DNA of 64,000 bases from Phaeosaccion multiseriatum (Eukaryota > Protista > Ochrophyta, other classes): assembly GCA_965112735.1 (NCBI GenBank), contig OZ218955.1, positions 1,922,001 through 1,986,000 of the forward strand. Direction: 5' to 3'. Below are positions 1-11,310 of this stretch, piece by piece. A program made the position numbers and the translations under genes. The stretch's first letter is position 1. The number at the start of each line of letters is the position of its first letter. Below the pieces are notes generated by a model. That model was not told where the DNA came from. It ran no database searches and saw only the letters and a program-made list of their open reading frames with translations.

Positions 1-2707
1 TGAAAGATGGCCAGCATGAGGCCGTAAAAGGAGGAGCCACACAGCCCCGCGAGACAGGCATACCCTAGGGCGGACGTGCTGACAAGCATGGTGCCCAGGA
101 GGGCAAAGGACGTGCCCACAGCGGTGGAGTATGCCACCATTAGTCTGTGAGGGGAGGGTAGTGGATGGCAGGGGATGGCAGGGGATGGCAAGGGATGGCA
201 TGGGATGGGCAAGATAAGAGCAGAGGATGGGGAGGGGGTTTGAGATCAGGGTAGATTCTTCTGCCTCTTCTTCCTTCTGCCTCCCTCTCTCCCTCCCTCC
301 CTCCCTCCCTCCCTCCCTCCCTCCCTCCCTCCCTCCCTCCCTCCCTCCCTCCTTTCTTCCTCCCTCCCTCCCTCCCTCCCTCCCTCCCTCCCTCCCTCCC
401 TCCCTCCCTCCCTCCCTCCCTCCCTCCCTCCCTCCCTCCCTCCCTCCCTCCCTCCCTCCCTCCCTCCCTCCCTCCCTCCCTCCCTCCCTCCCTCCCTCCC
501 TCCCTCCCTCCCTCCCTCCCTCCCTCCCTCCCTCCCTCCCTCCCTCCCTCCCTCCCTCCCTCCCTCCCTCCCTCCCTCCCTCCCTCCCTCCCTCCCTCCC
601 TCCCTCCCTCCCTCCCTCCCTCCCTCCCTCCCTCCCTCCCTCCCTCCCTCCCTCCCTCCCTCCCTCCCTCCCTCCCTCCCTCCCTCCCTCCCTCCCTCCC
701 TCCCTCCCTCCCTCCCTCCCTCCCTCCCTCCCTCCCTCCCTCCCTCCCTCCCTCCCTCCCTCCCTCCCTCCTTCCTTCCCTCCCTCCCTCCCTCCCTCCC
801 TCCCTCCCTCCCTCCCTCCCTCCCTCCCTCCCTCCCTCCCTCCCTCCCTCCCTCCCTCCCTCCCTCCCTCCCTCCCTCCCTCCCTCCCTCCCTCCCTCCC
901 TCCCTCCCTCCCTCCCTCCCTCCCTCCCTCCCTCCCTCCCTCCCTACTTCCTTCCCTCCCTCCCTCCCTCCCTCCCTCCCTTCCTCACCTGGTCTTCTTG
1001 GAGAAGACGACATTCCCAATCTCATCCCTCCCTCCCTCCCTCCCTCCCTCCCTCCCTCCCTCCATCCCTCCCTCCCTCCCTCCCTCCCTCCCTCCCTCCC
1101 TCCCTCCCTCCCTCCCTCCCTCCCTCCCTCCCTCCCTCCCTCCCTCCCTCCCTCCCTCCCTCCCTCCCTCCCTCCCTCCCTACTTCCTTCCCTCCCTCCC
1201 TCCCTCCCTCCCTTCCTCACCTGGTCTTCTTGGAGAAGACGACATTCCCAATCTCATCCCTCTTATACAAGTCGAGTGTAAAGAACCACAGCAAGACGTA
1301 CCCAACCTTGGGTACAAAGTCGACCCCCAACCATGCTCGCATCACCACAATCCCCCCAAAGGCAGCCGTGGTGTAGCGACTGATGAAGAAGGGCAGATAC
1401 TGATACTTGACGATGAGAGCAATGAAGCACCAGGGCATCGCACCGAGGATGTATCCGGAGGCGAGGAGTACGCAGAAACGCTTGGTAAAGGACTCGCTGC
1501 AGAGGGTGTTAGTGGGGGGAGGGAGGGAGGGGGGGAGGGAGGGAGGGAGGGAGGGAGGGAGGGAGGGAGGGAGGGAGGGAGGGAGGGAGGGAGGGAGGGA
1601 GGGAGGGAGGGAGGGAGGAAGGAAGGAAGGAAGGAAGGAAGGAAGGAAGGAAGGAAGGAAGGGAGGGAGGGAGGGAGGGAGGGAGGGAGGGAGGGAGGGA
1701 GGGAGGGAGGGAGGGAGGGAGGGAGGGAGGGAGGGAGGGAGGGAGGGAGGGAGGGAGGGAGGGAGGGAGGGAGGAAGGAAGGAAGGAAGGAAGGAAGGGA
1801 GGGAGGGAGGGAGGGAGGGAGGGAGGGAGGGAGGGAGGGAGGGAGGGAGGGAGGGAGGGAGGGAGGACGGGAGGGAGGGAGGGAGGGAGGGGGGGAGGGG
1901 GGGAGGGAGGAAGGGGGGAAGGAGGGAGAGAGGGACGGAGGAAGCCAGGGAGGGAGGGAGGTGAGTGAATGAATGTGTGTTGCTCGCTCACGCGCTCGCT
2001 CACTCACTCACTCACTCACTCACTCACTGACGTACTGACCTGTCTTTTATGGCGGAGAGTGGAATTGTGCGAGGCCCGAGCTGCAGCCATTGCGCGCTGC
2101 GAGAGAGGCAAAAGCATATGGGCAGGCAGGCAGGTATATGGGCACAAAGGTTGATTGGCGGACAGGCAAGTATATGGGCAAGTATCCACCCACACCCACA
2201 CCCCCACCCTACCCACCCACCCACCCACCCATCTATCCATCTATATCCATCCATCCATCCATCCACCCACCCACCCACCCACCCATCCATCCATCCATCC
2301 ATCCATCCATCCATCCACCCACCTAGGACGGAGATCAATGTCAAGCGAGGGCACCCAAGCAGGCAAGATACACACCACATCCCTCGCGAGGAGGTATATG
2401 TTGGATAAGTCAATGTAGCAGGCGAGCAGGAAGAGTCCGGAGATGTGGCAGTAGAAGTGGAAGGTGAAGGAGCGATTGAAGTCCGACGCCAGTTCAATGT
2501 CCTGAGGGAGGGAGGGAGAGGGGAGAGGGGAGAGGGGAGAGGGGTTGTGGGTGAGAGTGATGGCACACACACACACAAACACACCTTCTCTTCCTTTCCT
2601 TTCCTTCCCTCTCTCTCTCTTTGTCCCTCTCCCTCCACCTCTGTTTGTCCCTCTCTCTCCACCACACCTTTGTCCCTCTCTCTGTTCCCCTTTCTCTCTC
2701 CCTCCCT

Positions 2708-2744
<37 letters not shown>

Positions 2745-5700
2745 TGTTGTCTCTCTCTCTTGCTCTCTCATACCTCCTTCAGGAAGAAATTTCTGAGCAG
2801 GCTCGCGCACCACAGCCATGCCACAGCGTACGGCACCCCCACCAGTACCAGGAAGCGAAGGCGCCACAGCTGACTCACGCGCAGGCTAATTAGAGTCGTA
2901 TGGGCAGGGCAGGGGGGGAGGGGATTAGTGTAGTAGCGTTTGGGCAGCCGCCACAGCTGCTGCTTCTTCTCTCTCTATCCACCAACCTCTTCTCCCTTTG
3001 CCCCCCCCCCCACCCTCTCTCTCGCTCCCACTCCCCCCTTCTATCCCCCTCTCTCGGCCTCCCTCCCCTCCTCTCTCTCCCTCCCTCCACCCATCCCTCC
3101 CCTTCCCCTCCCTCCCTCACCTAAACTTGCTATCCATCGCTCCTGACATGGGGTCATCAGCCAAGAAGATCTTGGCCCTCGGCTTGCGGAAAGTATCCGG
3201 TATCAGTGAGGCCCAGCCATCCGTCACTACCCCCTCCCCCATGCGATAGGCTCCTCGTAGTAAGGTGAGGAAGCCGGCGATGACCACATAGAGCTCTGCC
3301 CCGCCGAGGGCTCGCTCGTTGCTGAGTGGGCGGTGCAGAGGGGGGCAGGGGGGAGGAGGGGAGCAGAGGAGGGGGGGGGAGGGTAGAGGGGGAGAGAGAG
3401 AGGGGGAGAGAGAGAGGGGGAGAGAGAGAGGGGGAGAAGGGGAGAGGGTGGCAGAGGGGGCAGGTGGGGAAGTGTGAGTGTGTGGAGTTGTAGCTGGGCG
3501 GTGACGTGAGATGAGGCGTAGGATGCTGCAGGCGCGACAAGGTACCACAGGCCCCGTGGTTCTAACACTGACCGCCCGACCGACCGATAGTCATCCACTG
3601 CAATCCACTGCAATCCACTGCCATCCACTGCCATCCACTGCCATCCATTGCCATCCGACCAACAATGCCGTCGATAACACGATACCTGGCTTCAATCTCG
3701 TACTGCGAGCAGTCGATTCTCTCCTGCCTCTTTTTGCTGTAGTTGCACTGCTCGCTGTTGAGGCAGCACTGAATCTCTTGCAGGGTGTCTTGTTCGCTGT
3801 CGACCAGGCTCTCGAATTTCACGCTTTTATCCCAACCGTCCTGTTTGGTGGAAAGGGAAAGCAGAAAGGACGAGGAGGAGGAGGAGGAGGAGGAGGAGGA
3901 AGGAGGAGGAGGAGGAGGAAGAGGGAGGAGGAGGGGGAGGAGGAGGAGGAGGAGGAGGAGGAGGAGGAGGAGGAGGAGGAGGAGGAGGAGGAGGAGGAGG
4001 AGGAGGAGGAGGAGGAGGAGGAGGAGGAGGAGGAGGAGGAGGAGGAGGAGGAGGAGGAGGAGGAGGGGGAGGAGGAGGAGGAGAAGAAGGAGAGGTTCAC
4101 TGTCAGTTTCTGGGTATTGGATCCCAGCCTTTCCCCCTTCCCCCTTCTCTCTGCACCTCTTGCCCGCAGGCCTCTCCATGCACCCCATATGCTTATCCCG
4201 TAGACCCATATACCTGAAAATACGATACGACCGTAAAGTCGTCGATGGCCCAGTACTCGTTAGCGTTCTCGAAGTCTAGCTGGTCCAGCATGAAGCGTGT
4301 GGCTGTCGTGTTGGCAGCAGGAGGGAGCTCCACCTCCACCTAAAAGAGGGAAGTGGGGGGGGGGTGGGGCAGCACAGAGGGAAGGGGGGGGGGGGAGTGA
4401 GTGAGTGAGTGAATGCGCGCGTGCACCCACACATCGCCAAGCTTTAGACGTGTGTAGAAGGAAGGTTTTCTGCTCTGCTCTCCCCCCTTCCCTTCCCTTC
4501 CCTTCCCCTCCCCTTCTCGCCCCTCTCCCCTCTCCCCTCTCCCCTCCTCCCCTTCCCGCACGCACGCACCAACGTAAATGTCTCTCCGCGGTAGAGAAAG
4601 GTCTCAAGTTTCTCCAACTCTTCCCAAGTGTCCCCGGCGTCGGTTGAGTAGTACGTCCAGATGTTCCCGCCGTAGGCCGGTTTGCACTCCTGTGGTCGGG
4701 GGCAAGGAGGAAGAGCGTTTTAAGACTTTTTGTTGACTTTTTGTTGTATCACATCACAGCACAGCGCCACACACACACACACATATATATATACGCATAC
4801 GCACACACTCACACACATACACAAGCACACATACACATACACATACACACATACACAACACACACACACACACAAACACACACACATACACAGGCACACA
4901 CACATACAACCCTCCTACACACGTATGCACACACATATATATATATACACATACACAACCCACACACACAACACAAGCACACACACATACAACCCTCCTA
5001 CACACGTATGCACACACATATATATATATATATGCACAAGCACACATACACACACACAAACATACACACACATACACAAGCACGCACACACACAACCCTC
5101 CCACACACGTATGCACATATATATATATACATATATATATATGCACACACAACACATGTATAACCAACTCGCCTGCAAGGTGGGGTCTGTGGTGTAGGGG
5201 CCCATTTTCAGCCTGAAGGAGAGCTTTCCTCCGAAGCGTACGTCCACGTCTTGAGTGACCACCCGCCGCATGTCTACACCCGAGAATGTCAGCGCGGAGT
5301 CCCCAGAGTGGGAACCGCAGAGGTCTGAGGGGGAGGGGAGGGGAGGGGAGGGGAGGGAGAGAGGGGGGGAGAGGAGACAAAAGTCATGCGGACCGTAGCG
5401 CTATCTCATGCTCTCCTCAGTGCTGGGTTGTACTCCCAGACACACACCCACACACGCACCCACACACCCACACACGCACCCACACTCACACACACCTACA
5501 CACGCACACACACACCCACGTACCAGAGGGTTTCCCGTTGTAGACGGAAGCCCACCTTGCGGAGGCGAGGGTAGGGCTGCTGACGCTGGCGTTTGCCCAG
5601 CTTTCGAAACCGTCTTCGAAGGTGTGAATACCTCCTGCAGCAACGGCAGAAGCAGACAGAGGCATATGGGGGGGAGGGGCAGTGTGAGGATGGGGCGCTT

Positions 5701-7451
5701 GACAGCGCCAGTGGCATTGCTCTCGACATGGTCAGCTACTCATCCATCCACTTACCCGTCTATCCTCCCACTCACCCACTCACTCACCTAGCCTCCCCTT
5801 CACACACCCATCCACGCACCCATCATCCCTCCTACTCGCTCACTCACCCACTTACTCACTCACTTACTCACTCACTCACTCACTCACTCACTCACTCACT
5901 CACTCACTAATTCACTCACTCACTCACTCACTCACTCACTCACTCACTCACTCACTCACTCACTTATTCACTCACTTACTCACTCACTCACTCACTCACT
6001 TACTCACTCATTCACTCACCCACCCACTCACTCACTCACTAACTCACTCAGTCACTCACTCACTCACGCCCTCAATCACTCACTCACTCACTCACTCACC
6101 CACTCACCCACTCACTCACTCACTCTCTCAGTCACTCACTCAGTCACTCAGTCACTCACTCACTCACCCACTCACCCACTCACTCACTCACTCACTCACT
6201 CACTCACTCACTCACTCACTCACTCACTCACTCACTCACTCACTCACTCACTCACTCACTCACTCACTCACTCACTCACTCACTCACTCACTCACTCACT
6301 CACTCACTCACTCACTCACTCACTCACTCACTCACTCATTCATTCACTCACTCACACTCACTCACTCACTCACTTACTCACTCACTCACTCACCCAAGAA
6401 GGAATCCTCGCAGAAGTCGAATCCCCACTTCTCTTTGCTGTGAATAAACATGGCCTCGTCATACACGCAGTAACTGCCGTACATCTTGAGAGAGAGACCA
6501 CGGGACGACGATAGAGAGGGAGAGAGAGGGAGAGAGGAGAGAGGCGGGGGGGGGGAGAGGGGGAAAGGAGAGAGGGAGAGACAGAAATGAGCGAGAGAGA
6601 GAGTGAGAAAGGGTGGCAAGAGGAGGGGTGGAGAGAGAGAGACGGAGAGAGAGAGAGAGAGATGGAGAGAGAGAGACAGAGAGAGAGACAGAGAGAGGAA
6701 GAGAGGGGGGGAGGGACAGAAGAGATGCGGCGCCAGCAGGGGGAGACAAGGGGCTGAGACAGGGCGTGTATGAGAGGTATCGTATCTATCACGTGTGTGC
6801 GTGCGTGCACAGCCTGCCGATCTACCCCCTCCCCTTGGGCCCCACCCCCCCAATCTACGCCACGTCTGCTCCCTTGCTGACAGATCTGCTGATCTTGACA
6901 CCAAGGTCCTGATCCTGACACCAAGGTCCTGATCCTGACCCTGAGTCCGAGCCTGAGCCTGAGCCTGAGCCTGACTTGACACCAGCTACGGACTGACTGA
7001 CTGACTGACTGACTGACACCAGGTACTGACCTTATTGACAGAGGTTTCCGAGCACTCCTCCCACTCCGTAATGGCCCCCGGTACGCCCCCCTGGAGGCTA
7101 CCTGGGTACTCCACACAGCGCTCGTCAGAGCTGCAGGAGGGGAAGAAGCCGTAGCATCTGGGGAGGGAGGGATGGATGGATGGAGGGAGGGAGGGAGGGA
7201 TGAAGGGAGGGAAGGAAGGAGAGGGAGGAAGGAAGGAGGAAGGGAGGGGGGGAGGGAGGGGAGGGAGAAGGAGAGAAGGAGAGAGGGAAGGAGGGAAGGA
7301 GAGGGAGGCGAGGAAGGAAGGAAGGAGAGAGAGGTGAGGGGGGGAGGAAGGGAGTGGTTGGTGACTGGCGATTGGTGGTTACTGCATGGGTGCGTACAGA
7401 CTGCCTTCCTGACTGTCCGAGGGCCGGACTGCCCGACAAGCTGAGAAGCAC

Positions 7452-7484
<33 letters not shown>

Positions 7485-8885
7485 TAGACAGACAGACTGA
7501 CACGTACACAGACAGATAGGGAGGTAGACAGACAGTCAGATAGACAGATAGACAGACAGACAGATAGACGGATAGGCAAACTGACTGACACACTCACTCA
7601 CTAACCTCCGATCGAAGATGGTCCTGGGCAGCGTGGCATCGTTCACGGCGAGTGTGGCGGCAATGGCGAGCACCACCAGAGTGATGAGCAGTGACATGAG
7701 GTAGCCCGTCACCACAGGGAGGGTGCCCGGATCCCGAGGGGTGCGCGTGTACCTCACACGTCTATGCGTGCGTGTGCGTGGGTGGGTGTGCGTTCGTACG
7801 TGCATGTGTGTGCGTGTGTGTGGGGTGGATGGGCGCATGCGTGCTGAGTATGGTACTGTGAGTTTCTCTCACATCACACCCATTCACTCACTCACTCACT
7901 CAATCACTCAATCACTCACTAGCCTCACTCACCTCTGCACCGGCACCTGACAAGAGGGGCAGTAGCCCGTCTTGAAGTAGTCGTCTGCGCAGAAGAATTC
8001 CCCGCAGCACTTGCGACGGAAGCCTTGACGTAAGCAAATCCGACACTCCTCCCCGTCCCTCACTTCTCCTGCTCCACGCTGCGGAAGGGAAGGGAAGGCA
8101 CGGGACGACAAGGGAAGTGAAGTGTGTCTCAGTGAGAAGGCCGACAACCTACCCACCCATCCATCCACCCATCCCTCCACCCACCCATCCATCCACCCAT
8201 CCATCCCTCCACCCATCCATCCATCCATCCACCCCTCCCACTCCACCCACCCACCTATCCATCCACCCCCTCCCCCCTCACCCATATACCTTTTCTAAGT
8301 CGCTCCAGAACTTGCCGGCGTTGTCACCAGTGGTGATAACTTGGCAGCCTGGGCAGTTGCCAGTGCTAGTGTAGCAGTACTTGCAGTATAGTCTGAGCAG
8401 CACAAGTTGGTGATGCAGTAGTGAGAGAAAGGGCAAGCAGGACGTGGTGGGTGGGTGTGTGGGTGGTATGTGTGTGTATGTGTGTGCGTGTGTGGTGGGT
8501 TGGTACCCAGAACGGGAAGGCACAGCCGTCAAAGTACACCCACCCGCCCACCTGTCACAGCAATCGCGCCGCTTCCCGTCCTCCATGCACACGAGACAGG
8601 CTCCTAACTCTGGCGTTTCCACCTGCATGTGAGTGGGTTCGTGCGGTGCAAGGGGGCGTGGACAGAGTTTGAGTTTCAGCGGAACACTCTTACTTCTCAT
8701 ACATCCTGCCGCCCGCCCGCCCATCTAAGCCCTGTGAGAGGAACCAACCACCCATCAACCACACGTCCAAGCAAGCCTGCACGGACAGGCTTCCCCTCCT
8801 CTCCAAGAATAAGGCAGATATTCTCCTAAACGACAGGACGGGCAGGCATCTCCTTCACCCCTCTCAGCCAGACTTTACAACGACC

Positions 8886-8946
<61 letters not shown>

Positions 8947-9721
8947 GCAACAGACCTTCTCTGCCTCTTTCAGACGCTGCCTGCAGGGGCAAATGATTGC
9001 AGTCGGATCATTGTCAAAGCAGCAGCCATCAAGGTCCCGACAACCGCCCTCGTGGTTGCACCAGCAGCTGCCAGGCCGCACGCGCTTGCGTATCGTTTTC
9101 TGGGGCGGTCAGATGTTACAAGAGGGGATGAGGGGGGCGGGGGATGGGTGATGATGCAGAAGAGGTGGGAGGAGTTCAAGACTATCTGATGCATGAAGAG
9201 CTAGTGGTAGAGCACAAGATGTGCTTTTGGGTCGGGCAAGGGCCGGACACACGAGGGGCAGCCACAAAAAGCGCTTCCGCCCCCCAACATCTTGGAGGGC
9301 TTGCTTGCCTCAATACGAGAGCCCTGCCCCAAGAGGAGAGGTGGATATACACAGATGTCGCTATGTACGCCTCCTGTCCTATCTGTCCATCTATCTACCG
9401 CACCTGCAGGTGCGCTTTCTTGTCGTCGTGCTCGTCGTCGGAGGGCACCTCGACGGCCTGCGTGCCGAAGAAGGGGTCCTCGTCATCGTCGTCGCCCAGC
9501 CCCGCGCCAACCTGTTGGCGTTTCACAGTAGTCACGAGCCCAGGGTGGGAGGAGGTCGAGGTAGGCAGGGTAGAGAGGGGGGTGTGTGGTGGAAGGAGAA
9601 AGTAACCTGGACACAGGCCAAGACTCACCTGTCTTTGGCGCTTTCTCTTGTTCTTGGGTTGCCTGTTCTTCACGTTTCTCTTCTTGTCTCCCTCAGGATC
9701 GACAATCCAGGGGGGTGACAT
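1..9721 (-). CDS. Multi-exon membrane protein: Cys-rich segment, two RING-like Zn fingers, TM helix, reelin-like repeat with Asp-box, several C-terminal TM helices (3' end outside window)
   Basis: Phase-consistent exons (minus): 9721-9629, 9511-9404, 9099-8956, 8825-8787, 8622-8552, 8392-8290, 8078-7933, 7761-7606, 7157-7031, 6484-6394, 5634-5524, 5324-5173 (GC donor), 4689-4570, 4339-4214, 3840-3686, 3321-3121, 2885-2774, 2501-2323, 2096-2040, 1496-1221, 144-<1. RING-like: [32 protein letters not shown] and [34 protein letters not shown]: [24 protein letters not shown]. Reelin-like: [28 protein letters not shown]...YSTDAGDTW...[18 protein letters not shown]...WAIDDF. Confidence 0.85.
283..1215. 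repeat. Intronic (CCCT)n microsatellite, ~900 bp
   Basis: Near-perfect tetranucleotide array; source of the spurious PPSL/GGRE ORFs. Confidence 0.97.
1515..1960. repeat. Intronic (GGGA)n/(GGAA)n microsatellite
   Basis: Directly visible; pyrimidine-rich on the gene's sense (minus) strand, upstream of the acceptor at 1497. Confidence 0.95.
5840..6393. repeat. Intronic (CACT)n microsatellite, read as (GAGT)n on the sense strand
   Basis: Begins immediately at the GTGAGT donor (6393) of the minus-strand gene. Confidence 0.95.
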
Positions 9722-9948
9722 AACATTAAGGCGTCCTGGTGCTCATGAAACCCAATCTAAACCAACGCTCCCTCGGCTCTCTCTTGCCTTGAAAACTGAA
9801 CGTTTCGTCGCCGCCGGACAATTTTTTTGGCGATCATGATGAGCAAGGCATCATCATAAAGAATAAGAAGGAGGGAGTGGAAGACAGGCACTGGCGCACC
9901 ACAGTGACCGCCGCAGCGCAGCAGACAATAATCTCGACAGAGCGGGCG

Positions 9949-11310
9949 ATGGGGATCACCGATGGGGGAGAAAGAGTCTCAGTGGGCTTTAGGGTGAAGG
10001 CGGCGAGGCCAAAACCTGAGAGCAATGCCAAGCGAAACAGTGGAAGAGTGGTCGAAGAGAAAAAGGAGGACAGGAAGTTGCAGCAACGCCGGAAGCCAGC
10101 CTCAACCCGCCGGCCCTCCACCGCATCGCAAGCAACCAAAAGCAAGGATGGAAGCGAGGAAGAAGGGGATACCAATACTTCTCTGCCCCTCCCCCCCGAC
10201 CGCGTGTCTTATGTCCCGCCTCGAATCCCCCGCCGCCGCCCACGCTCAGCGGCCGGGGTGCACGGTCACCCTGTCTCCTACCGTACCAGGAGGCCCCCTC
10301 CCGGGCGGCATTCTGATGTGAGGGCAGTGTGTGTGGGAGATAGTGGCACGAAGGGAGGGCAGGCGAGGGCATGGTTCACGCCGTCCTCCACCGCCCCTAC
10401 CCAGCACAACGCCGACTCGGATGGTGCTTGTTCTGGTGCTGGTGCTTCTGCTGCTGGTGGTGACTCCGCTCCAAGGCGGCGATGGGACACCTCAACTGCA
10501 GCCGTCGACTTTCAAGTGGGCCTGACGGAGAAGCTGTATCGAAAGTATCAGCGTCACTCCACAGCAAGCACTGACGCAGCAGGAGGAGAAGCAGCACCAG
10601 CAGGAGGAGGAGAATCAGGGGCAGCAGGAGGGACAGGAGAAACCGAGTGGAAAGATCGGGATGGGGCGAGAGCTAGCATTAGCGATAGAGATAAGCTTAG
10701 AGGAGCAGCCTTCGTGGGAAGGCGTGATGGGGATTGGAGAGCAAACAAGGGAGGAGAAGGGGGGGCATGGGGGCAACAACAACACCAACAACAACACTCC
10801 GACAGGTGGAATATGGAGGAGAAGGGAGTTGAAACGGAGATTCGGCCGCTGGTCCCGCCCTCTCCCGAGCGGAGACGGACTTGTCGCCGACACAGGGCAT
10901 GGCAAAGGGCGGTGGAGCTTCTTCGCGACCAACAGGGGGACGTGGACATTGAAGAGGCGCTGCACAACGGGCCCGCTGTCGCCGCTGGTAGCAGCACCAG
11001 CAGGAGCAGCAGCCGAGTAGAAGAGACGGGCGGTAGTGGAGTTAGGGTGGGGTGGGGAGGGGAGGGGGGAGGGGCCAGGGCAAGGAAGTGGAACAGGTCA
11101 ACGGAGGTGTTGTACCCGAACGACGCGCCCAAGAGGGCTTACTTGGGAGGGGCCACTCGGTTTGGGGGCTACACCTCCCTCAAGGCCACTGTAGTCGGGC
11201 AGCTGCTGGATCCGGGGGTAGCAACGGCAGCAGCGACAGCAACAGCCTCAGGAGGAGCCTCAGCAGCAGCCTCAGGCACTACCACCACTCTGGGAGCAGC
11301 TCGCTTTTGA
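9949..11310 (+). CDS. Intronless hypothetical protein (basic/Gly-rich, likely disordered)
   Basis: Non-repetitive open frame 9877-11310; first in-frame ATG at 9949; head-to-head with the RING/reelin gene; no recognisable domain. Confidence 0.6.
   Translation: MGITDGGERVSVGFRVKAARPKPESNAKRNSGRVVEEKKEDRKLQQRRKPASTRRPSTASQATKSKDGSEEEGDTNTSLPLPPDRVSYVPPRIPRRRPRSAAGVHGHPVSYRTRRPPPGRHSDVRAVCVGDSGTKGGQARAWFTPSSTAPTQHNADSDGACSGAGASAAGGDSAPRRRWDTSTAAVDFQVGLTEKLYRKYQRHSTASTDAAGGEAAPAGGGESGAAGGTGETEWKDRDGARASISDRDKLRGAAFVGRRDGDWRANKGGEGGAWGQQQHQQQHSDRWNMEEKGVETEIRPLVPPSPERRRTCRRHRAWQRAVELLRDQQGDVDIEEALHNGPAVAAGSSTSRSSSRVEETGGSGVRVGWGGEGGGARARKWNRSTEVLYPNDAPKRAYLGGATRFGGYTSLKATVVGQLLDPGVATAAATATASGGASAAASGTTTTLGAARF

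Follow-up and report, generated by a model that had tools for sequence, protein, structure and literature searches.

A reelin-type ectodomain and tandem RING-like fingers on a conserved ochrophyte membrane protein: a candidate receptor-like ubiquitin ligase

Transmembrane RING-type E3 ubiquitin ligases with a sensing ectodomain include RNF43/ZNRF3 and the PA-TM-RING family (PMC11231576, PMC7291719). We analyzed a gene from the ochrophyte alga Phaeosaccion multiseriatum whose product appears to have a comparable arrangement of parts. The gene lies in a 64,000-nucleotide (nt) stretch of DNA (the window), which is positions 1,922,001-1,986,000 of the forward strand of contig OZ218955.1 (assembly GCA_965112735.1), and it occupies window positions 9721-1 on the minus strand. 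A model's annotation of the window, made from the DNA letters and without database searches (the sequence-only reading), had proposed that the locus encodes a receptor-like E3 ligase with two RING fingers, a transmembrane (TM) helix, a reelin repeat, and at least five further hydrophobic segments.

By analogy, the nearest known designs seem to be membrane ligases of the RNF43/ZNRF3 type and of the Doa10/MARCH6 type. In MARCH6/Doa10, an N-terminal RING is followed by many helices. Like RNF43/ZNRF3, the algal protein combines a non-cytosolic binding domain with cytosolic RING-like fingers on one membrane protein, and like MARCH6/Doa10, it has these fingers at the N-terminus, before multiple helices. 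But we detected no sequence relationship to either of them, and several features set the algal protein apart from the RNF43/ZNRF3 type: its RING-like fingers precede the first TM helix (a type-II-like arrangement), there are two fingers instead of one, the ectodomain is of the reelin type instead of a PA domain, and there are seven extra helices whose fold is unmatched. As described below, this receptor-like transmembrane RING-type architecture and its topology are real and conserved.

The gene has at least 20 exons (Table 1), starts with an ATG at 9721, and reaches base 1 of the window. The DNA is GC-rich, the exons are short, and the introns are loaded with simple repeats. To build the exon model, we read the minus strand in three frames and inspected the borders; a script then located the exons and checked the flanking dinucleotides. 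Every internal exon has an AG acceptor, and the donors are GT after 18 exons and GC after one (exon 11, at 5173). The cumulative reading phases are consistent across the 20 exons, which comprise 2,672 coding nt within the window, and there is no in-frame stop; such agreement goes well beyond what chance would produce. We also used tblastn to compare an 888-residue protein from Chrysoparadoxa australica (P0001) to the window, with positions 7254-7309, which lie within a low-complexity intron, masked. The matches run colinearly from 8637 to 6 and correspond to residues 27-814 of P0001 (788 residues). This comparison added an exon of 57 nt (2096-2040) to the model and lengthened exon 17. Because P0001 aligned only up to residue 814 of 888, about 74 C-terminal residues of the algal protein are missing, beyond the start of the window. 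At the other end, the N-termini of the brown-algal orthologs P0054 and P0059 (MVSPPWEPYPERKRK; the general form is MVSPPWEP...KRK) resemble the open reading frame at 9721 (MSPPW...), which supports this ATG as the start. The encoded protein has about 965 residues and eight TM helices.

At the level of sequence, the exon structure and the colinearity with the ortholog confirm that the gene is real and is one gene rather than several, as the sequence-only reading had assumed; relatives have the same layout. That reading also had the elements and their positions right. Its description needs three corrections: two short 5' exons (9721-9629 and 9511-9404) come before the exon with the Cys-rich segment, there is a further exon at 2096-2040, and the window's edge truncates the gene.

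Judging from homology, the gene belongs to an uncharacterized family that is conserved across ochrophyte algae, from chrysophytes to kelps. Our searches used single exons from the window or orthologous proteins as queries. Comparing the longest exon (1496-1221) to 1.84 billion representative proteins yielded 44 relatives, of which the best was the protein from C. australica (59% identity over the exon). Starting from the first alignment, a word search brought in proteins from Discosporangium, Pylaiella, Undaria, Ectocarpus, Choristocarpus, Scytosiphon, and Tribonema. Nine relatives from the group of brown algae, Tribonema, and Chrysoparadoxa contain the Pfam domain PF21471, which is discussed below, and 57 relatives with this domain come from a chrysophyte-type group that includes Ochromonas and Mallomonas, a group from which a third search added 56 proteins beyond its query. 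The orthologs that the sequence-only reading had suggested looking for in stramenopile proteomes are thus found in algae of the brown, yellow-green, and golden lineages. Ochrophytes with walls, such as brown algae, and naked ones, such as Ochromonas, both have members of the family.

Full-length proteins from Chrysoparadoxa, brown algae, Tribonema, Mallomonas, and Ochromonas align colinearly with the gene. Both fingers are present in 58 proteins of the collected set. In alignment A1, nine full-length proteins share the same layout: no signal peptide, two 32-residue fingers with eight Cys each, a first TM helix (TM1), an ectodomain of ~310 residues, seven more TM helices, and a tail with Cys and His. 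Some relatives are uninterrupted open reading frames on contigs of 3-5 kb (878 amino acids on 4,488 nt, or 720 amino acids on 3,846 nt). All of the family members are annotated as "hypothetical" or "unnamed," and NCBIfam gave no match. A word search with the longest exon against proteins of 141-448 amino acids found no match, nor did two scans of metagenomes (one with peptide patterns and one with an exact 29-mer). Our literature search found no paper that describes an architecture of fingers, a reelin domain, and multiple TM helices.

The ectodomain contains a domain related to reelin. We scored the window's domain exon by exon against PF21471 (Reelin_subrepeat-B; model length 127 positions, gathering score 27 bits). 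The match of exon 11 covers profile positions 5-49 (23.9 bits, E = 3.9e-5), and that of exon 13 covers positions 90-126 (21.0 bits, E = 3e-4). Exon 12 encodes an Asp-box (YSTDAGDTW), which matches Pfam's BNR family (E = 0.0012). All ten of the full-length orthologs that we tested match PF21471 at 58.6-72.4 bits, over positions ~2-126 of the 127. When exons 11 and 13 alone were compared to all solved structures with phmmer, reelin was the best hit for each (E = 1.2e-3 and 8.8e-3), and the alignments fall on the equivalent part of several subrepeats. Given the full-model scores of the orthologs and the best hits of these exons, we consider the domain to be a true member of PF21471, and not a protein that matches only a generic Asp-box or galactose-binding fold. 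Its exons (10-13) coincide with the region, 5634-4214, where the sequence-only reading had placed a reelin-like subrepeat.

Like subrepeat B of reelin (2E26, 3A7Q, 6A48), the algal domain is a jelly roll with an inserted Asp-box, and the two share a start signature (CG...ALxFSG...R...T.D.D) and an end signature (TRFR..Q......WA.DD). The presence of an Asp-box within reelin subrepeats was described previously (PMC2716378). In contrast to reelin, which is a secreted animal glycoprotein built from A-EGF-B repeats, the algal protein crosses the membrane several times and has its domain between TM helices. The domain and reelin have low sequence identity, as reflected in the per-exon E-values of 1e-3 to 9e-3. 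Also, each protein has just one domain of the subrepeat-B type: using Pfam on the exons and the orthologs, we detected no EGF domain and no second subrepeat, including subrepeat A. So, the term "reelin repeat" in the sequence-only reading goes too far. The same reading described reelin repeats as mainly a feature of secreted animal reelin. Subrepeat B, however, is also found in bacterial surface proteins and in brown algae. The only mention in the literature that we found is a list in which the InterPro "Reelin" entry is common to brown algae and animals, in hypothetical proteins (PMC11827588). The bacterial surface proteins P0063 and P0064, which have CHU_C, HYR, Ig-like, and TSP3 domains, also contain Reelin_subrepeat-B, so the domain extends well past animals and algae.

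The reelin-type domain is flanked by Cys-containing segments. The Cys positions of the segment encoded by exons 8-9 are conserved in alignment A1, and Pfam gives no match for this segment. On the other side, C3, C4, C10, and C22 of exon 14 are invariant in alignment A3.

Several lines of evidence indicate that the fingers are cytosolic and that the reelin-type domain is outside the cell or in a lumen, as the sequence-only reading had it. The N-terminus is hydrophilic and basic and has no signal peptide, and the brown-algal orthologs begin alike. After the fingers comes TM1, with a Kyte-Doolittle peak of 2.5-3.1 in the orthologs, followed by the acidic segment of ~310 residues and then seven helices (where at least five had been predicted), encoded by exons between 3321 and 1. 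The basic stretch ahead of TM1 fits the positive-inside rule if the fingers are cytosolic. Across 69 proteins, N-glycosylation sequons (N-x-S/T) occur at 7.4 per 1,000 residues in the predicted ectodomain, compared to 3.4 for the N-terminus and 3.1 for the remainder. This 2.2-2.4 fold enrichment fits an extracellular or lumenal position. Since there are eight helices, both termini would be cytosolic.

Both of the fingers that the sequence-only reading had described are present, as is the Cys-rich segment that precedes them (CWC..C..CC..CPC). Across the family, each finger has the pattern C-x2-C-x8(-10)-CC-x4-C-x2-C-x6-C-x2-C; in the window, the first loop is x8 in both fingers. Finger 1 is interrupted by an intron with a phase-2 junction, which restores an Arg codon. 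Among the 47 sequences whose first loop has 9 residues, each of its eight Cys is retained in 46-47, and among the 10 whose loop has 8 residues, in 9-10. All members have CP-x-C in finger 1, and position C1+2 is mostly Leu, Met, Ile, or Val. In 17 of the 47 sequences of the 9-residue type, the residue after ligand 8 is Lys. The eight Cys of finger 2 are invariant in all 69 family members.

Comparisons to solved structures point to RING domains. A profile of the family had 26 hits, and about 20 of these are RING ligases. The top hit was ML-IAP (E = 8.5e-4), followed by XIAP and cIAP (E ~ 0.02), with BRCA1, MIB1, and synoviolin lower; RBBP6 was a weak hit (E ~ 0.6). When the exon for finger 2 was used by itself, the best hit was again the RING of ML-IAP (E = 0.28). 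In the AlphaFold model of the orthologous tandem fingers, each finger forms a beta-hairpin and a helix (beta-beta-alpha). Foldseek matches with a low root-mean-square deviation (rmsd) of 2.1-3.2 Å were to the RINGs of PML, SIAH1, RNF213, RNF168, and arenavirus Z, with template modeling scores (TM-scores), by target, of 0.34-0.60 (mostly 0.55-0.60). When we compared the model exhaustively to the structures of 48,161 chains, RING or U-box domains made up ~31 of the 50 best matches, and these covered both fingers. The cysteine motifs do, then, model as RING/U-box-like, and on the strength of these comparisons we think that both fingers probably adopt a RING/U-box fold.

The closest RINGs are those of the IAP and zf-C3HC4_3 type (ML-IAP/BIRC7, 4AUQ; XIAP; cIAP). 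They share the second half of the pattern (C-x2-C-x6-C-x2-C), that is, ligands 5-8 are spaced as in the algal fingers; CP-x-C is found in finger 1; and the predicted unit is beta-beta-alpha. But the first loop has 11 residues in IAPs instead of 8-10, and the algal fingers have no His ligand. RBBP6 (3ZTG, 2YUR) has an all-Cys RING with adjacent Cys, whose CC-x4-C-x2-C spacing we take to be equal to that of the algal fingers. Compared to the RINGs of both IAPs and RBBP6, the algal fingers differ in forming an N-terminal tandem pair on a membrane protein and in keeping residues that resemble contacts for the ubiquitin-conjugating (E2) enzyme in finger 1 only.

Some observations count against the view that the fingers are RINGs, or that they are active ones. 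Pfam's RING models gave no match at threshold: zf-C3HC4_3 was found in 7 of 15 members, with a best E of 0.09, and zf-RING_2 and zf-RING_5 gave weaker matches than this. (Pfam's CRIPT family matched 3 members, with a best E of 9e-4.) Confidence in the model of the fingers was only moderate, with a predicted local distance difference test (pLDDT) score of 69, and the exhaustive comparison gave Z scores of 4.0 or less, with ribosomal protein uS14 scoring on a par with the RINGs among which it is listed. The 8-10 residues of loop 1 equal or fall short of the minimum of 9 in classical RINGs, and a pair of adjacent Cys replaces C-x-His. Finger 2 has further oddities. In the window, zinc ligand 6 of finger 2 is an Asp (GAC, codon 7982-7980). 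Since all 69 relatives have Cys at this position, the Asp is unique to this window; a sequencing error is an unlikely cause, as two bases separate the Asp codon from the Cys codons. Position C1+2 of finger 2 is varied (Val, Cys, Ile, Thr, or Lys). An Arg follows ligand 7 in 52 of the 69 sequences, and a Gly, Glu, or Asp, but never Arg or Lys, follows the last Cys; there is no linchpin-type residue and there are no conserved residues for contacting the E2. Overall, it is plausible that finger 1 has ligase activity, and doubtful that finger 2 does.

We also considered whether the fingers are tandem LIM domains, which gave the lowest E-values in Foldseek. These alignments have rmsd values of 9-13 Å, which means that the structures do not superpose, and no LIM domains appear in the exhaustive structural list.

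The remainder of the protein is a membrane module. The AlphaFold model of the orthologous region, from the Cys motif that follows the reelin-type domain to the C-terminus, has a pLDDT of 83 and a predicted template modeling score (pTM) of 0.80. Besides its seven helices, it has a beta-hairpin that points outward from between TM3 and TM4, and cytosolic beta-strands in the TM4-TM5 loop and in the tail. In the alignment, an Asp in TM4 is invariant and an Arg in TM6 is nearly so. The tails of the orthologs have a conserved cytosolic motif, CPC-x6-C-x3-H (at ~900-925 in P0053), which may be a further zinc site; in this gene, the corresponding region is beyond the window.

The membrane module appears, from its model, to be a compact fold that lacks a recognized counterpart among solved structures. 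Foldseek gave no convincing match (best E = 0.5), the top match in the exhaustive structural search (Z = 7.4) was restricted to a helical hairpin of 62 residues, and a profile of the module had a best E of 0.4 against solved structures. In Pfam, no family recurred, including the families for G protein-coupled receptors (GPCRs), TRP/polycystin channels, rhodopsins, and TMEM117. Three leads did not hold up. For a polycystin/mucolipin-type channel, TRP and HCN entries appeared in Foldseek only at E of 0.5 or above and with rmsd above 11 Å. TMEM117 (PF15113) had a language-model score of 0.79, which is within the range of chance hits, and it had no support from Pfam at E up to 10. Look-alikes of exon 19 in the ESM Atlas were confined to bacterial XrtH-associated proteins, whose score of 0.82 is in the range of chance. 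TMEM117 and bacterial membrane-anchored PH-like proteins (bPH_5, DUF3093) do have a weak resemblance to the module with its cytosolic beta-sheet. For the bacterial proteins, the TM-scores by the bacterial entries are 0.5-0.59, with a score in the chance range, and neither they nor TMEM117 had a profile match; both are weak leads and no more.

We propose that the protein senses a ligand outside the cytosol and uses finger 1 for ubiquitination. By analogy to related beta-sandwich modules, the jelly roll would bind an extracellular or lumenal ligand, most likely a glycan or a component of the matrix. The membrane module would convey occupancy by the ligand to the cytosolic side, where finger 1, with its CP-x-C and its hydrophobic C1+2, would recruit an E2. 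The protein would then ubiquitinate itself or adjacent membrane proteins and thereby control their turnover. Finger 2 would more probably be a structural or partner-binding RING than a catalytic one. We infer the enzymatic activity, the ligand, and the location, and we give the proposal as a whole slightly less than an even chance. As for the sequence-only reading of a receptor-like E3, its architecture, topology, and RING-like fold were borne out, while it is weakened by the single reelin subrepeat, by the lack of a RING match at Pfam's threshold, and by the residues of finger 2. It is also possible, although we hold this only tentatively, that the family is an undescribed class of receptor-ligases in ochrophytes, in which a reelin-type jelly roll, an orphan seven-helix module, and tandem miniature all-Cys RINGs would link an outside cue (from the wall, the matrix, or a glycan) to ubiquitination on the membrane's inner side.

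The strongest challenge to this proposal is that the membrane module itself could be the functional center. It might be a channel, transporter, or receptor whose fold is new. The reelin-type domain would then be a ligand-binding or gating lid, and the two fingers and the C-terminal Cys/His tail would be zinc modules with non-catalytic roles, such as dimerization, scaffolding, or regulation, instead of ubiquitin transfer. The membrane module is the best-modeled part of the protein, and the conserved Asp and Arg in TM4 and TM6 would be unusual in a mere anchor. This alternative would also account for the unmet RING thresholds in Pfam, for the CRIPT matches, and for the state of finger 2, which lacks residues of the E2-contact or linchpin type and whose sixth ligand is dispensable in this species. 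The low E-values of tandem LIM adaptors would fit as well, but given their rmsd values, we place more weight on the low-rmsd and exhaustive matches, which favor RING/U-box domains, and on the profile hits, which are overwhelmingly to RING E3s. Finger 1 retains CP-x-C and a hydrophobic C1+2, and the membrane module matches no fold of a channel, transporter, or GPCR. We consider this alternative a real contender, at roughly one chance in three.

Alternatively, the protein might be a lectin-type ligase of the endoplasmic reticulum (ER) or Golgi, for quality control or cargo sorting, whose lumenal reelin-type domain reads glycans on precursors of secreted proteins, walls, or scales. The topology says only that this domain is non-cytosolic, and most of the known multi-pass RING ligases (Hrd1, Doa10/MARCH6, TRC8) reside in the ER. 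The presence of the family in both walled and naked ochrophytes is also consistent with this location. But an ectodomain that is rich in Cys and in sequons fits the cell surface equally well, and we think that an endomembrane ligase is unlikely. It is far less likely still that we joined separate genes or a pseudogene by eye: the word search and the two metagenome scans yielded no protein or cDNA contig from the same species, one donor is GC, and finger 2 has lost an invariant Cys, but these points are outweighed by the 20 phase-consistent exons with no in-frame stop, the 788-residue colinear alignment to P0001, and the identical architecture of dozens of relatives, several of which are uninterrupted open reading frames.

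Table 1. Exons of the P. multiseriatum gene and the features they encode (window positions)
Feature	Positions	Strand	Description
Exon 1	9629..9721	-	ATG at 9721, motif MSPPW..., then a Lys/Arg-rich stretch; donor CAG/GTGAGT (slash marks the exon end)
Exon 2	9404..9511	-	Acidic linker; AG acceptor, GT donor, phase 0
Exon 3	8956..9099	-	Cys-rich segment CWC..C..CC..CPC, predicted cytosolic; also in Tribonema and brown-algal orthologs
Exons 4, 5	8622-8552, 8392-8290	-	Finger 1 (8598-8344), interrupted by intron 8551-8393
Exon 6	8078-7933	-	Finger 2 (8045-7950)
Exon 7	7606..7761	-	Basic stretch, then TM1 (~7724-7641), predicted cytosol to outside
Exons 8, 9	7157-7031, 6484-6394	-	Six-Cys membrane-proximal segment of the ectodomain
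Exons 10-13	5634-5524, 5324-5173, 4689-4570, 4339-4214	-	Jelly roll of the reelin subrepeat-B type, with Asp-box
Exon 14	3686..3840	-	Segment after the reelin-type domain; four Cys are invariant (CC-x5-C ... C); end of the ectodomain
Exons 15-20	3321-3121, 2885-2774, 2501-2323, 2096-2040, 1496-1221, 144-1	-	Seven-helix module (TM2-TM8), cut by the window start

The repeats within the gene are extensive. Exon 19 (1221-1496; 276 nt, so that the frame is maintained if it is skipped) lies between two inverted microsatellites: (CCTC)n at 280-1218, with 233 copies, and (GGGA)n at 1517-1961, with 111 copies. In the pre-mRNA, hundreds of bases in the two introns that flank this exon would thus be complementary to each other, and this could favor exon skipping or back-splicing. 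Other intronic repeats are (AGG)n at 3867-4092 (75 copies), CA-rich units of 83 or 103 nt at 4768-5136, and (ACTC)n at 5834-6393 (140 copies). There is also a (TGT)n repeat at 8885-8946, immediately 3' of the donor of exon 3. About 150 bp upstream of the start codon, on the plus strand, is an open frame of 477 codons (9877-11310). Its translation is rich in Ala, Gly, Ser, and Arg and is of low complexity; it may be a divergently transcribed neighbor.

The lineage of brown algae and their relatives evolved multicellularity and complex cell walls separately from the animal and plant lineages. To our knowledge, very few of the membrane signaling proteins of these algae are understood. The seven-helix module, with its confident model and no solved relative, is a good target for structure determination. 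Ectocarpus has an ortholog, and it may therefore be open to genetic tests. Should the fingers prove to be active ligases, this family would be a lineage-specific coupling of an extracellular binding domain to the ubiquitin-dependent control of membrane proteins, and it would give a reelin-type domain outside of animals a first functional context.

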